NCBI RefSeq assembly: GCF_947568905.1
Contig: NC_079172.1
Coordinates: 17,422,001 to 17,486,000, forward strand
Source of the DNA: Ostrea edulis
Taxonomy: Eukaryota
Reading direction: 5' to 3'
DNA length: 64,000 bases
Numbering within the stretch: position 1 is the stretch's first letter; every line of letters starts with the position of its first letter. The position numbers and the translations under genes were made by a program. The notes beneath the pieces are model-generated. The model saw only the letters and a list, made by a program, of their open reading frames with translations. It was not told the origin of the DNA and made no database searches. Shown here one piece after another: positions 33,901 to 39,900 of this stretch.

Positions 33901-36900
33901 CTTATAGGCATAGAAACAGTATACTAAAATTTTGCTACAAGTACTGGTAATTTTGTGATTATAAGAGTCATAGAAAATTTGTACAAAAACTCAATGTTAT
34001 AAAATGCATATATTTAGAATATGTTAAAAACATTGCTTCACAAAGTACCACAAATTTATACTTTAATGAAAGTGTATGTCAAAGTTTCAACATGGTTCAT
34101 GGTAGGGTCAAAGGTCAATAATGTCTTGTTTCTGCTACCAAAACGAATGAAAGCATAGTCATCAGTTGGTTTTTTCCTATACTATTTGTTTTTTGCACTT
34201 CACCAAAATTTTTAGAAGATGCAGTAAGTACCTAAATCAATTTTAATTCTAGACTGGCAGCTCCCTGATCCAACCTGTCAAAGGACACCTGTATTTCTCT
34301 CCGAAATTCGATTCTTTATTGTCCTTGTGTTATACAACTCATCGGAATACATCTACATGTAGTACATGTACACACACAATATATCTAATTTTGTAAGGTA
34401 ACAATGGGTGAGTGGACAGGACAAGATAGGAGTAGAAATTACAGATAAAACAATTTTTAAACATGTATTTTAACTACATTAAAGAATAATTTACGTTCGA
34501 CTATAATTTATCTGAATTTTTTTTAAAACCATTTCTTTTAATGAACCTTTAACGGTTTGGCAAATAACAGGGCACTTTGTCATTAACCATCAGATCTATT
34601 GGTCACTTTTTTTCTAAGTGGAACAGGATGCAATGGCTTGAAAAAATGTCAATCATAAATTTTTTAATGATACACTACAATCATAAATATAATATTCATG
34701 TATATGTATACTGCAGGAGTTTATTATACATATATCTCTAGATTTTACAAGACAGCATAAATGCTATTCATGAATTCTTTACAAGAATCCTTTGAAATAT
34801 AAAAACTTAGCGCTTCTTTTTTTCCCCAAGTCTTTTTAAATTTTACTGTAAATTTATATCAGCAACATTTATACAATGATTAATAATATGCAGTTAATCG
34901 CCATAGTCCTTTGAAGAGGTTTTAGATAGGCCCTTCAGATACCCCTTAATCACATGACTATCATGTGTTGGTTATGCAAAAAAAATTTATAAAGGGGACT
35001 TGACTGAATTTTATCAATTACACAAGTTTCTAATTTAACATGGGCCAAAATTCAGTATTGAAACCTCTTCTTTCTGTAATAATCCTAGTCCACACATTAT
35101 ACAAACACAGCAAAATAATTTTCCTAAAGCAATATTTGTTGCCTGTATAGCTCAAAAATACCATTAAACAGTTTTCTCCATAACACATGTTCATAGCACG
35201 TTTTGATAAGAAGTTTGATCAAAACTACCCAGATCATTATACATTGTACATGTATAAAGTATTTTGATCCCTTGTCACAGTTGTACATTTACATGAGGGA
35301 CCTTTTCTCTCCACTATAAATATATAGGAGCAAAAATGACAGTAAAACAGATATGAAATATTAGTATCCATTTATTCAAAATTTGCAGTTAGTACAACAT
35401 GTTGAACACAAAACATTATTAGATTGACAAAGCAGTAGAATTAATCACATTAAATAGTTGTAAGTTATCGAACATCACAAAATGACAAAAGACTCGGGAA
35501 TTACAGATCACTGAAAATAATTAAACACTTTTAAAAAAAGAAGAAGTCTATAAGATATATATATATTCATGCACACTGAAGTCTATATGTCATTCCTAAG
35601 CACTCTATTTACAAAGCAAACTGCCACATCTTTACAACTTTCTCTTCTTGGAGGGTGGCATGGATCCATCGGCGAGGAAGCCCTTGTCCATGACTTTGAG
35701 GACTTCAGTCAGGTACGTCTGCACCGCAGCAAGGGAAGCAATGATGGCAGGCGATCCAAAACCATGGGAGATGAGGCTGAAGTTGGTCAGATAACTCTGT
35801 ATCTCTGGTTCCAGGACAGGCTGGGGACGCGAGTTTCCAATTGGAGATCGGTCTTGATTGAGGATATCCATGAACTCTTTCAGAATCTGTTTCGTGGCCA
35901 GCACCATATTTTTGCGTGCCATGATTTCCTGGGGATCCAGCGTCTGGTACTTCTTACAGTTGTATTCGGCACATTTCTTGGCGGGGAACTCCGACTCGCA
36001 CAAGTACCCATAATCCCTCGCTAGACGTACAGCTTCGCCTTCCACCAGTGATGTCATGAGTGTGGTCTGGACAGCCTTTCTTCTGCCTGCTGGGAGACTC
36101 AGGCCAATCTTGTCAAGCTTTTCTCTCAGACTTTTCCCTCCATTCTTGGACTTTGCCCTTCTGAGAACTCCACCAAGCAGGGAAGCATTCAGGCACTCTG
36201 GGGGAGCTAATCTTCTCTGTATCTCTGCAATAGTGACTTTGTACTTGGTGGTACTGCTGAGGAGGGAGAGCCTTCCATCCACCATGCAGAAAACATCAGC
36301 AGGAGCAGCTGCAGCAGATATATCCACATCATTGCGACTAGCTTTCTCATGGACTACAACGGCGGTTTTCTGCGACTCTGGATTAAAGTTGCCCATCATT
36401 TCCCTAGACATGTAATTCTCCATCGGTGGGTAGTTTCCATTCATGGGTGGCATTGCCTGTTGGATCCCATTGCTCATCATACCTTGGTCTGCGAAACTAG
36501 CAGGCATGCCTCCCGGCATCATGGGTTCTGGTCTGTGGATGCTTGGACCCGCTCCCTGCATGGATTCTTGTCTATGGATGCTAGGACCCGCTCCCTGCAT
36601 GGGTTCTTGTCTGTGAATGCTCGGACCCGCTCCCTGCATGGGTTCTTGTCTGTGGATGCTCGGACCCGCTCCCTGCATCTTGTACTCGTGGACAGTGTCC
36701 ATGTTATGCATGGCTTGGTACTCCTGCTGATTGGGTTGTTCCTGCTGCTGCTGGTAGTCTGACAAGGTGGCGTAAGCATTATTGTACTGGTAGTCCATGT
36801 TAGGCTGCGATGACACGGTGTAAGGCGGTGGGAAATAAGGCGCAGGATAATCGGTCTGGGGTTGCATCACCGATTGCTCAGTAGCGGGGGGATACGGGTG

Positions 36901-39900
36901 ACTCTGAGGATTCTGACCGTCAACATTGTGATGGTCGATGTAATCCCTATCGTACATCATAGCCCCATTCATCTTGGCTTTAACAGATAAATGTAGCAAG
37001 TTAACAATTACCAATTTCCAGCCAATGGAAAAAGTCCAAATATTGTCTGAAGATTTCAGAGAGTTTGTTCTTCACTTTCAATAAATCGTTTCCACAAGGT
37101 CTGAACAGCTCTAAGCCAGAGTGAAAGGGCTAGCCAGAGGGATACCTATATATACCTGGCCTGAGCACACAAACCAATTAAACGAGTTCTACCTCCTACT
37201 CCTGACACCCTCCAAATCACAGGCTACTCTCATTGGTAGTTGCAGGTGCTGCATCTAATTACATTTCCAGTACTAATTACAGGTACCTAGGTCTCCTCTT
37301 TCTCACCTTCACTTACAATAAGTAGGTGTCAGTGCACAAGTAGACCATTTAACAATCATTACAGCAATTATAACTGACAAAATAATTTGTATTATTATCT
37401 AGGTTTTAGAAATCATATTCCATACATGTAATTATTTACAAATCAAATGTTGGATACTATACAGCTTGATTAGGATTCCTCACCAAGGTCAAATTATTTC
37501 AAGAAATGTTTCACAACTAGGTTTTAAAAAATAAATAAATTCAATTATAACTTAATCCTGTCTACCATGTATAACTTTTATTTTAAAATTAGAAAAATGT
37601 TTAAACATTCCAAAAGTGAACATTTTTCAAAAAAATTATAATTATATTAAATCTTTCCTGAAATATTTTAATAGATATTTCATTCATGCATTTTTAAATA
37701 TCACCAATGCATGGAGGTTACAGTTTTCTATACTAGTATTTCAAATCTTTACTTTTGATTAAAATCACTAATGTCTATCATTTCCATTTTGAATCTCACT
37801 TAAGATGAGTACTAAACATTATAAACTGAGAACAACTAAAAAATAGTGATACATTGATTGTAGTATACATCTCAAATATCTATTTATTTGTCCATAAAAG
37901 TGTCCTTGTTTATGAATAAATGTAAGATGCAATTTTAGGAAATAAGAATGACCTTGAGAACATATCAGAATTTGTCCAAAAACACTTGCCATACATTGAT
38001 CTGATTTTTCTTAATCACATCTGGAGATCTGCCCTTATCTTCACATTTATATTTCTCAATCATAATTTGATTTAAATCATATCTGAATGCACAGTTAAAG
38101 GGACTGATCCACAATTTCCCCTCAAACTTTGTTTATCACTTTTAATGATCAAAATATACTGTCCAATGTGTTTAAAAGGTTTCCCAAAAAATTAAAGTTA
38201 TACCTTATTACAGAAGCTCATTTTAGAGAGTTTATTGATTTGTAAACAAAGATTACAGTATTCTTTAGGTAAAATGTGTCATCTAAAGTTAAATTTGAGA
38301 CTGTGCAAAATTAAGATGCTTTAAAATACAAAATTAACATTTCACTGGTTTGTTTGTTTACATTAAAAGACTCTAATCTTTGTTTACATAACAGAGTTAA
38401 GGCATCAAAATTTTGGCTGTCAACATTAAACGAGTTATATTTTTAATGTTTAACATAAAAAATGAAAAATATTTTTTCAAAAAAAAAAAAAAAAAAACCC
38501 TAACAAAAAAACCCCATGAACCAGTTCCTTTAATACTAAATTATGAAACTTTGCCTTTCTATATACTACCTAAACATATAAATTTTTTCATACACAAAAG
38601 CCTGTTCATACCTGTGTTTGAGTAACATTGATGGTGGAGGATTTAGCTAGCTCCTGTATGGGTATAAAGCTACTGCCCGGTTTGATTCTGATTGTGGCAG
38701 TGTTCAGTGTGGTAGTATGAAGGGATTTGGTAGAAGTGGCATCACTGACATCAGATGCAGCTATATTCTCTTCGGTTGTGTCAGCTGACGTTTCTCCAGA
38801 TGTAGCAATCTCTGAAATAAAATGAAGGTACGTATAGGTCAAGATTCAGCTTTCAAAGTATATGTGGTTACAGAAAATCTAGAGTAAATCTGTACTGCAC
38901 ATGCCCTTAAACATGTATTGCAAATTCCCTTGAAGGGGCTAACCCTTAAACATGTATTACAAATTCCCTTGAAGGGGCATTCGCTGTGAAAGTGATGGCA
39001 ACTATTTTTTTTTCAATGGCATGGGAATATACACCTGTATATCAATGACTAATAAAAACATTTATTTTGCCCTAAAACAAGAGAAACCTAATAAAACTAT
39101 GTTAGATAATTGCTTCTAGTGTAAAGAAATATATAGGGAAGAATTATTTAATCACCAAAATTACACATTCATGTGCCTGCTTTGAGGTTGAAAAGTGTTT
39201 GAAATAATTAAATACTGATGTTATTACTGAAATATATAATATTGAGCAATTTTCATTGAATTCAATTTTTGCTGACAAAATGACAGCTAATTTAAACAGA
39301 CTTGTAACAGGAACATTCCTTTACTCTATTGACCAGTGTTAGCACAATACCACTTAAACAAAATGATTCTTACATTCATTATGGCAATCCTATAAACAAA
39401 ATTTCAACGTCTTCCATCCTCCTTTTTTTAAATCTAAAGACTTTCATTTTCTCTCTCTCAGTAAATGACAACTTTAAATAATTACATTGGTTATTTCATA
39501 AGAATCAGCACTTATCACAACATTTAACAGGACAATCAAGTGCAAAATGTTCTCCAACTTCAAAAATAATTTACAAATATCTCGCACCAATTTCAGTATT
39601 GGATTTATACTATTGGCCAATACTAGATGCGCACTAATTCTAGACCTGAATTGTCAGGTTTTCACATTTCTTCAAAGGTTTTGTATTCTACTTATTCAGC
39701 TGTGCTGTTAGTGTCCCCCTTTTCAAGAGTCAAACTAACCATCTTTTATTCACTGTAATAGTCATCTTATTAAAGTTTATTTTAAAGATATCAAACAAAA
39801 TCAGGTCTCAGAATTATGTATCATGTTTGACTATAGTAAAAAAATCTGTAAACAGTGTTGAAATTGCATAGTAGCCCACAACCTAAAAAAATATTAAAAA

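Follow-up and report, generated by a model that had tools for sequence, protein, structure and literature searches.

A single-exon AP-2 gene in an EMSY intron of Ostrea edulis: structure, constraint and probable origin

The window analysed here is a stretch of 64,000 nucleotides (nt) of Ostrea edulis DNA (NCBI RefSeq assembly GCF_947568905.1, contig NC_079172.1; C9:17422001-17486000, position 1 being its first letter) in which a single-exon gene for an AP-2 transcription factor lies inside an intron, and on the same (minus) strand, of a gene encoding an EMSY protein. The sequence analysed contains no N stretches. We computed the gene structure, synteny, phylogeny, purifying selection and promoter conservation of the nested gene. 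The explanation that we regard as probable is that it is a functional, independently transcribed AP-2 gene, which goes back to an ancient RNA-mediated duplication of the canonical gene and was later re-copied into the EMSY intron of the oyster lineage.

The nested AP-2 gene and its predicted promoter

The features of the nested gene, in window coordinates, are the following.

35632..36972 (-): AP-2 coding sequence in a single exon, 446 codons and a stop (the 446 amino acids, aa, occupy 35635-36972)
35704..36291 (-): TF_AP-2 DNA-binding and dimerisation domain, residues 228-423, profile positions 1-196 of 197
36823..36834 (-): PPPY motif in the N-terminal region, residues 47-50 of the nested open reading frame (ORF)
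36520..36678 (-): 39-bp coding tandem repeat (13-aa unit), 4.1 copies with 92% match by Tandem Repeats Finder
36973..37122 (-): predicted 5′ untranslated region (UTR), from the Inr-like element to the ATG, with an inferred start site
37147..37154 (-): TATA box TATATATA, identical in Ostrea, Saccostrea and a third oyster
37232..37236 (-): CCAAT box, inside a conserved upstream block of ~240 nt (about 37100-37340)
35371..35376 (-): AATAAA polyadenylation signal, 259 nt from the first base of the stop codon

In the list of ORFs the minus-strand frame runs over 35632..37014 and has 460 aa when counted from a TTG; its first ATG, at 36972, gives the 446-aa protein. Pfam TF_AP-2 (PF03299) matches this ORF with an E value of 1.1e-72 and 244.5 bits (cut-off 23.4), and the complete domain, with its basic region and helix-span-helix, makes the nested copy a member of the AP-2 family. 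The protein is 74% identical over its full length to its Saccostrea orthologue and 59% identical over 327 residues to the canonical oyster AP-2 protein, and it keeps 112 of the 134 columns that are invariant in 15 canonical bilaterian proteins. The PPPY sequence, which we take to be the AP-2 transactivation PY motif, also occurs in canonical AP-2 proteins and in the nested orthologues, and the latter share with the O. edulis protein an N-terminus beginning MNG. At the other end a basic tail, PPSKKRKL, is conserved in the nested clade, and every single-exon AP-2 copy that we found has a shortened C-terminus without the canonical ...KDENRRE tail. Members of the AP-2 family bind as dimers to GCC(N3)GGC-type sites, and the nested protein presumably binds AP-2-type sites in the same way.

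The 13-aa repeat is present as one unit in the Saccostrea nested protein, and its Ostrea-specific expansion is the main cause of the difference in length between the two proteins (446 versus 403 aa). Its copy number is polymorphic within O. edulis, four or three units giving proteins of 446/445 or 432 aa, and the polyQ run adjoining the repeat varies by one codon among alleles. Variation in five O. edulis alleles is in-frame only, with the DNA-binding domain invariant; in four DNA runs the only changes in the ORF are a 3-nt in-frame deletion and a substitution. Three oyster species and every allele seen have an uninterrupted ORF. Between Ostrea and Saccostrea the dN/dS ratio of the nested gene is 0.10 over 399 codons, at a dS of about 0.92; for the AP-2 domain it is 0.03-0.05 and for the N-terminal half 0.16-0.24, so the dN/dS comparison that the initial annotation of this DNA had proposed indicates purifying selection.

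Upstream of the coding sequence, TACCAATG (holding the CCAAT box) and TATATATAG (holding the TATA box) are invariant in the three-oyster alignment, as are E-box-like and TAATT motifs in the same block. An Inr-like TCACTCT (A+1 at 37122) stands 32 nt past the start of the TATA box, and its TCA is likewise invariant in the three oysters. The 440 nt 5′ of the ATG are 82% identical between Ostrea and Saccostrea, while synonymous sites are near saturation; the portion of the leader closer to the ATG is not conserved in the three oysters. The upstream block is also the sole non-coding part of the intron with a blastn match to Saccostrea, the remaining intron being unalignable. At the 3′ end, the AATAAA at 35371-35376 is the only AATAAA or ATTAAA within 735 nt downstream, and the AATAAA of the Saccostrea nested gene stands at a comparable distance (+283). 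The initial annotation had described an intact 446-aa AP-2 ORF with candidate TATA and CCAAT motifs and a polyadenylation signal; the ORF list and the domain match bear out the first, and the three signals are present, the TATA and CCAAT boxes being invariant across the oysters. The block as a whole looks like an independent TATA-dependent promoter, and from the invariant CCAAT/TATA/Inr together with the AATAAA we predict an unspliced mRNA of about 1.8 kb. The nested AP-2 looks functional because its dN/dS is low, its CCAAT, TATA and Inr elements are invariant and its alleles are intact.

The EMSY host gene and the age of the nesting

The host gene contributes the following features to the window.

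33513..38611 (-): EMSY intron containing the AP-2 unit, 5,099 nt, GT...AG, frame continues
38612..38811 (-), start approximate: EMSY exon upstream of the guest, acceptor tttcag, donor gtatga; matches Pinctada EMSY residues 928-973 and is conserved with Saccostrea
33269..33512 (-): EMSY exon downstream of the guest, 84% identical to Saccostrea; matches Pinctada EMSY residues 989-1059
54197..54544 (-): EMSY start codon and ENT domain, exons 54544-54383 and 54271-54197, the first translating as MWPMLLDM...STLR
31770..32419 (-): C-terminal EMSY bromodomain, exons 32419-32339, 32180-32097 and 31934-31770

The upstream exon ends ...NVTQTQ|gtatga at 38612 in phase 0 and without a stop, and the downstream exon starts ttgttacag|LAAECVSQ at 33512, also in phase 0; it ends in phase 1, and the next exon supplies the matching two bases. 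A 1195-aa Pinctada EMSY protein maps collinearly onto window 54544-32094, on both sides of the AP-2 gene. In the annotation of Saccostrea cucullata a 1205-aa product with ENT and Bromodomain spans the AP-2 gene, with a GH63 glucosidase gene downstream as in the window, and a blastn comparison of the EMSY loci of Ostrea and Saccostrea is collinear exon by exon. The ENT match itself (PF03735, E value 3.8e-16, window 54200-54505 on the minus strand) occurs once in the O. edulis genome. The translations of the two exons there are recognisable as the N-terminus of EMSY.

As an independent check of the host, the 54-aa first ENT exon was searched against 1.84 billion representative proteins, and it retrieved proteins called EMSY-like. 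The full-length ENT hits, 15-16 in number and 1055-1513 aa long, end in the bromodomain that in the window is encoded by exons 32419-31770, and Pfam found ENT and Bromodomain together in all eight of the ENT-bearing hits tested. Ten proteins with both domains were looked up; they come from Pinctada, Mya, a chiton, Haliotis, a nemertean, Owenia, sea urchins, a sea star, a hemichordate and a millipede, and several of them are named 'EMSY-like' by their sources. A search of a protein cluster atlas with a single bromodomain exon returned generic bromodomain clusters only. We conclude that the host is almost certainly one EMSY gene running from ENT to bromodomain, because the frame is continuous across the guest, the Pinctada protein is collinear with the locus and the two-domain architecture recurs across invertebrate phyla. 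The initial annotation had placed the AP-2 gene on the host strand inside a 5.1-kb EMSY intron (38611-33513) and had worried that the flanking exons might not be one gene; the splice boundaries, in phase 0 on both sides, agree with the former, and the frame, the Pinctada mapping and the eight of eight Pfam results dispel the latter. EMSY with ENT and a C-terminal bromodomain thus appears to be a widespread invertebrate architecture, found in molluscs, an annelid, a nemertean, a millipede, echinoderms and a hemichordate. To our knowledge vertebrate EMSY has no bromodomain, which suggests that it was lost there.

The nesting can be dated by comparison with other bivalves. Saccostrea cucullata has a single-exon AP-2 gene (403 aa) in the homologous EMSY intron, of about 3.4 kb, on the same strand. 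In a third oyster, one genomic contig (L017) has two host exons followed by the promoter block, a 418-aa AP-2 ORF and a further host exon, arranged as in Ostrea and Saccostrea, with an intron of about 3.3 kb. That the ORF, the block upstream of it and both flanking exons are conserved in Saccostrea and in this oyster goes well beyond chance. The homologous intron of Pinctada imbricata measures about 374 nt (L016 28074-28447), and a tblastn search of the 35.7-kb Pinctada EMSY locus with three AP-2 proteins gave nothing better than an E value of about 1. The AP-2 gene is thus within EMSY in three oysters and not in Pinctada, and the insertion therefore took place after the oyster/pearl oyster split and before the Ostrea/Saccostrea split. 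Conservation of the nesting in other bivalves, a question raised in the initial annotation, accordingly holds for Ostrea, Saccostrea and the third oyster but not for Pinctada.

Very high-copy repeats flank the AP-2 unit within the host intron (window 37950-38525 and 34302-34493), with a summed contig depth in one DNA run of about 240,000 and 12,000, respectively, against about 80-120 in neighbouring sequence. These repeats are probably transposable elements that have lengthened the intron, which measures about 0.4 kb in Pinctada, to its 5.1 kb. Putative joints near 38100-38430 in the DNA runs fall in high-copy repeats and were discarded. At the Pinctada imbricata EMSY locus (L016:29648-31310) there are about 17 tandem units of ~100 nt, each matching EMSY residues 1093-1112, and we read this array as an exon-like segment amplified within an intron.

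Origin of the intronless state and alternative explanations

A six-frame Pfam search of the whole 895-Mb O. edulis assembly gave exactly three AP-2 loci, on C9, C1 and C4. The C9 locus is the nested single-exon copy of the window. The C1 locus holds a second uninterrupted copy, a 436-aa ORF named 'AP-2-alpha-like' beside a TLD gene. The C4 locus is the canonical gene, for which mapping of the canonical oyster protein gives at least six coding exons over 13304020-13317842 (13.8 kb); it is annotated as AP-2-epsilon-like, with isoforms X1-X3 in O. edulis (XP_048761422.1). The canonical gene of Pecten, in turn, encodes 495 aa over 36 kb. An intron-containing paralogue, which the initial annotation had suggested should be sought elsewhere in the genome, is thus present on C4, and the single ORF on C9 lacks all introns of this persisting parent-type gene of at least six coding exons. 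Relative to canonical metazoan AP-2 (vertebrate TFAP2A-E and the oyster AP-2-epsilon-like gene), the nested copy has the same complete TF_AP-2 domain, N-terminal PPPY and similar length, but it differs in having no coding introns, in lying on another chromosome, in its PPSKKRKL tail, in the 13-aa repeat expansion and in its long branch.

Single-exon copies also occur elsewhere. A locus with TLD and BTB-Kelch genes carries a single-exon AP-2 in Pinctada (418 aa) and a second such gene in Saccostrea (442 aa); the C1 locus of O. edulis is syntenic with it, and Magallana K1Q9B2 is counted among the copies at this locus. Like the nested gene these copies are intact, have a truncated C-terminus and belong to the same clade (100/100), but the TLD copy is intergenic with an altered PPxY whereas the nested copy is intronic with PPPY. 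The C1 and C9 copies align as DNA in the domain-coding part only, at 69%. In Mytilus trossulus (L012:10001-11245) a single-exon AP-2 of 414 aa with a shortened C-terminus is annotated inside a DEAH-box helicase gene (1238 aa) on the same strand; it is like the oyster gene in these respects but differs in its host and in belonging to a separate clade with a long stem. The concern that mollusc AP-2 genes might be generally intron-free, and such nesting already documented, is therefore justified in part, in that single-exon copies are common in pteriomorph bivalves, but the canonical genes are multi-exon.

A maximum-likelihood tree of 43 AP-2 proteins was computed under the LG+C20 posterior mean site frequency (PMSF) mixture model. 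Every single-exon copy from Ostreida falls into a single clade, which both the mixture model and LG+G4 support at 100/100; it has a stem of 0.56 and lies inside the pteriomorph canonical group, and the support for this placement within canonical AP-2 is 99/94 and 100/100. Within the clade there are three subclades, namely the EMSY-nested genes (100/100), the oyster genes of the TLD locus (100/100), and Pinctada with one relative. The Mytilus single-exon clade has a long stem of its own; it falls in a polytomy under the mixture model and is joined to Ostreida at 98/98 in a reduced LG+G4 tree, a model prone to long-branch attraction. Because all Ostreida single-exon copies form one fully supported clade derived from the canonical gene, we take the intronless state to be old and not to have arisen at the EMSY locus. 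Retroposition probably happened elsewhere than in the EMSY intron, and there may have been a single old event, or possibly two if the mussels are separate. The initial annotation had proposed a retroposed or intron-stripped copy, and this stands in so far as the gene is intron-free with a multi-exon paralogue on C4, but it is no fresh retrocopy at this site; it belongs to an old clade of oysters and Pinctada (100/100), possibly including mussels.

The course of events that we consider probable would have begun with an intron-stripping, RNA-mediated duplication of the canonical multi-exon gene before the oyster/pearl oyster split. The single-exon paralogue would then have become established at the TLD-Kelch locus, the older home of the clade. 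After the split from Pinctada, and before that of Ostrea and Saccostrea, the gene, by then intronless, would have been copied again, into what was at that time a short EMSY intron. This copy would have landed in the orientation of the host, between its ENT-bearing and bromodomain-bearing parts, and been retained since. Transcription would proceed from its own CCAAT/TATA/Inr promoter, starting near 37122, to give the unspliced mRNA of about 1.8 kb that ends past the AATAAA at 35376-35371. The protein would have retained the full DNA-binding and dimerisation domain and the PPPY motif and gained the basic tail PPSKKRKL. In this scheme we infer the start and end of transcription, expression, DNA binding and the RNA or DNA route of the second duplication.

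Several observations count against this explanation or limit it. None of the six sequencing runs carrying this stretch is recorded as RNA, and the four that were examined cover intron and exons evenly and have contig totals close to genome size, as genomic DNA does, and they display neither a 38612>33512 joint nor transcript ends; the assembled contigs with the nested protein (L010, L017-L021) are collinear with the genomic sequence past the promoter and are likewise DNA. Since all runs with this stretch are genomic DNA, the start site, the poly(A) site, an intron-free UTR and expression remain predictions. The branching order of the three Ostreida subclades is not resolved, so that the tree is compatible with either the TLD-locus gene or a lost copy as the source of the EMSY-intron gene, and the long branches of the single-exon clades invite attraction artefacts. 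The flanks of the C1 and C9 copies have no similarity, and RNA- and DNA-mediated routes of the second duplication therefore look alike. At the C9 copy the AATAAA is not followed by an A-run, and direct repeats were not noticed in the flanks, as is expected at such an age (dS about 0.9 between orthologues). With neither a poly(A) remnant nor a target-site duplication, the argument for retroposition is that all introns were lost together and that the gene was relocated.

One alternative is that the mRNA of the canonical multi-exon AP-2 gene was retrocopied directly and independently into the EMSY intron, and that the resulting gene groups with the other single-exon copies through long-branch attraction. 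The stems of the single-exon clades are indeed long (0.4-0.75 substitutions per site), the nested copy keeps the canonical PPPY that is altered in the TLD-locus copies, and it retains more of the canonical-invariant columns than does the C1 copy (112 versus 105). The Ostreida clade, however, has full support under both the mixture model and LG+G4, and all of its members have in common the shortened C-terminal tail, and we therefore think an independent retrocopy unlikely.

A different objection is that EMSY might use the ORF as an alternative terminal exon or have exonised it, or that the ORF might be read only within host transcripts. Its place in the intron, on the host strand and with an AATAAA downstream, would fit this, and the DNA runs are compatible with chimeric transcripts. 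We nevertheless judge it very unlikely. The CCAAT box, TATA box and canonically spaced Inr stand directly upstream and are invariant in three oysters, the ORF has its own ATG and orthologues with the same MNG... N-terminus, two single-exon AP-2 genes of the same clade stand alone between TLD and Kelch, and the Saccostrea annotation has the AP-2 as a separate gene. It is scarcely credible, in turn, that the exons on either side come from separate genes, one with ENT ending upstream and one with the bromodomain starting downstream, with AP-2 between them. That idea draws on vertebrate EMSY being without a bromodomain, and on the host join being argued from DNA-level evidence. Against it are the phase 0 at the GT without a stop, the matching phase at the AG and the consistent phases downstream; the 1195-aa Pinctada protein, which joins the homologous exons across a 374-nt intron; and the same terminal bromodomain in 15-16 ENT proteins that are divergent and span six phyla, with several RefSeq models among them. 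Finally, a decaying processed pseudogene that is still open by chance would also be intronless, intronic and subject to a polymorphic coding repeat, but it is effectively refuted by an omega (dN/dS) of 0.10 at a dS of about 0.92, with 0.03-0.05 in the domain, by the open ORF in three species and all alleles, and by the conserved promoter.

Neighbouring sequence and meaning for oyster AP-2

Directly downstream of EMSY lies one further gene.

20093-24360 (-): GH63 mannosyl-oligosaccharide glucosidase gene, with a 622-aa uninterrupted exon

The order EMSY(AP-2)-GH63 is kept in Saccostrea; in Pinctada EMSY is followed by a lipase gene. Between EMSY and GH63, immediately after the final conserved EMSY block (27840-28001), the window has a long tandem array on the plus strand at about 25400-27100, with the motif HKHTVPVRASVTQTHGTSQS in its overlapping ORFs; in the 26-28 kb bin AT skew is strong (+0.16) and GC skew negative. 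A dispersed repeat, made up internally of ~165-nt units, occurs at window 50706-51580, 59712-60288, 17259-17780, 2956-3532 and 30259-30524 and is 70-77% identical to tandem-like sequence at the EMSY locus of Saccostrea (L009 5746-7121); a conserved family of satellites or of miniature inverted-repeat transposable elements (MITEs) is a possible identity for it.

The nested AP-2 gene is already in public annotation, as an NCBI protein of identical length for O. edulis and as 'AP-2-alpha-like' in Saccostrea, and the nesting itself is already visible in the Saccostrea annotation. In full-text literature searches no paper turned up that deals with AP-2 genes of bivalves as intronless or nested, and a search on EMSY, ENT domain and bromodomain returned kinetoplastid papers only. 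A larval transcriptome of Crassostrea angulata from 2012 has an AP-2-alpha-like contig among its abundant transcripts, which is not assignable to a paralogue (PMC3428355).

Intronic retrogene-derived genes are a known class, in which same-strand nesting is the minority but not rare. Intron-resident retrogenes in the mouse include Mcts2 in H13, Nap1l5 in Herc3 and U2af1-rs1 in Commd1. The oyster gene is like these in being an intronless guest, derived by retroposition and with its own (here predicted) promoter, in the intron of a multi-exon host. It is unlike them in that they are mammalian and several are imprinted, whereas the oyster guest is a developmental transcription factor that was already in place when Ostrea and Saccostrea separated. 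For Mcts2/H13, activity of the guest promoter has been reported to shift polyadenylation of the host, an interplay of the type that the initial annotation had in mind when it expected the two oyster transcription units to compete for splicing and polyadenylation. A comparable arrangement in oysters, in which the same-strand guest acts as a switch and an active AP-2 promoter or poly(A) site terminates or occludes EMSY within the intron, is a doubtful but conceivable possibility. If it were true, the host would yield an ENT-only EMSY without the bromodomain, resembling the vertebrate architecture, AP-2 and EMSY would be expressed in a mutually exclusive manner by stage, and this coupling would explain the retention of the nested gene in three oysters.

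AP-2 factors are key regulators of ectoderm, neural tissue and germline, of which the prevailing view allows most invertebrates just one gene. No paradigm is changed. The value of the nested AP-2 gene is in its clean dating, its strong constraint and the testable question that it poses about host and guest. Oysters prove to have three AP-2 genes, one canonical and two retrogene-type paralogues under strong constraint. The presence of the nested gene in three oysters and its absence from the Pinctada locus make it a datable case of the growth of a transcription-factor family by retroposition in molluscs, and the locus provides a natural system for studying how a same-strand intronic gene coexists with the splicing and polyadenylation of its host.

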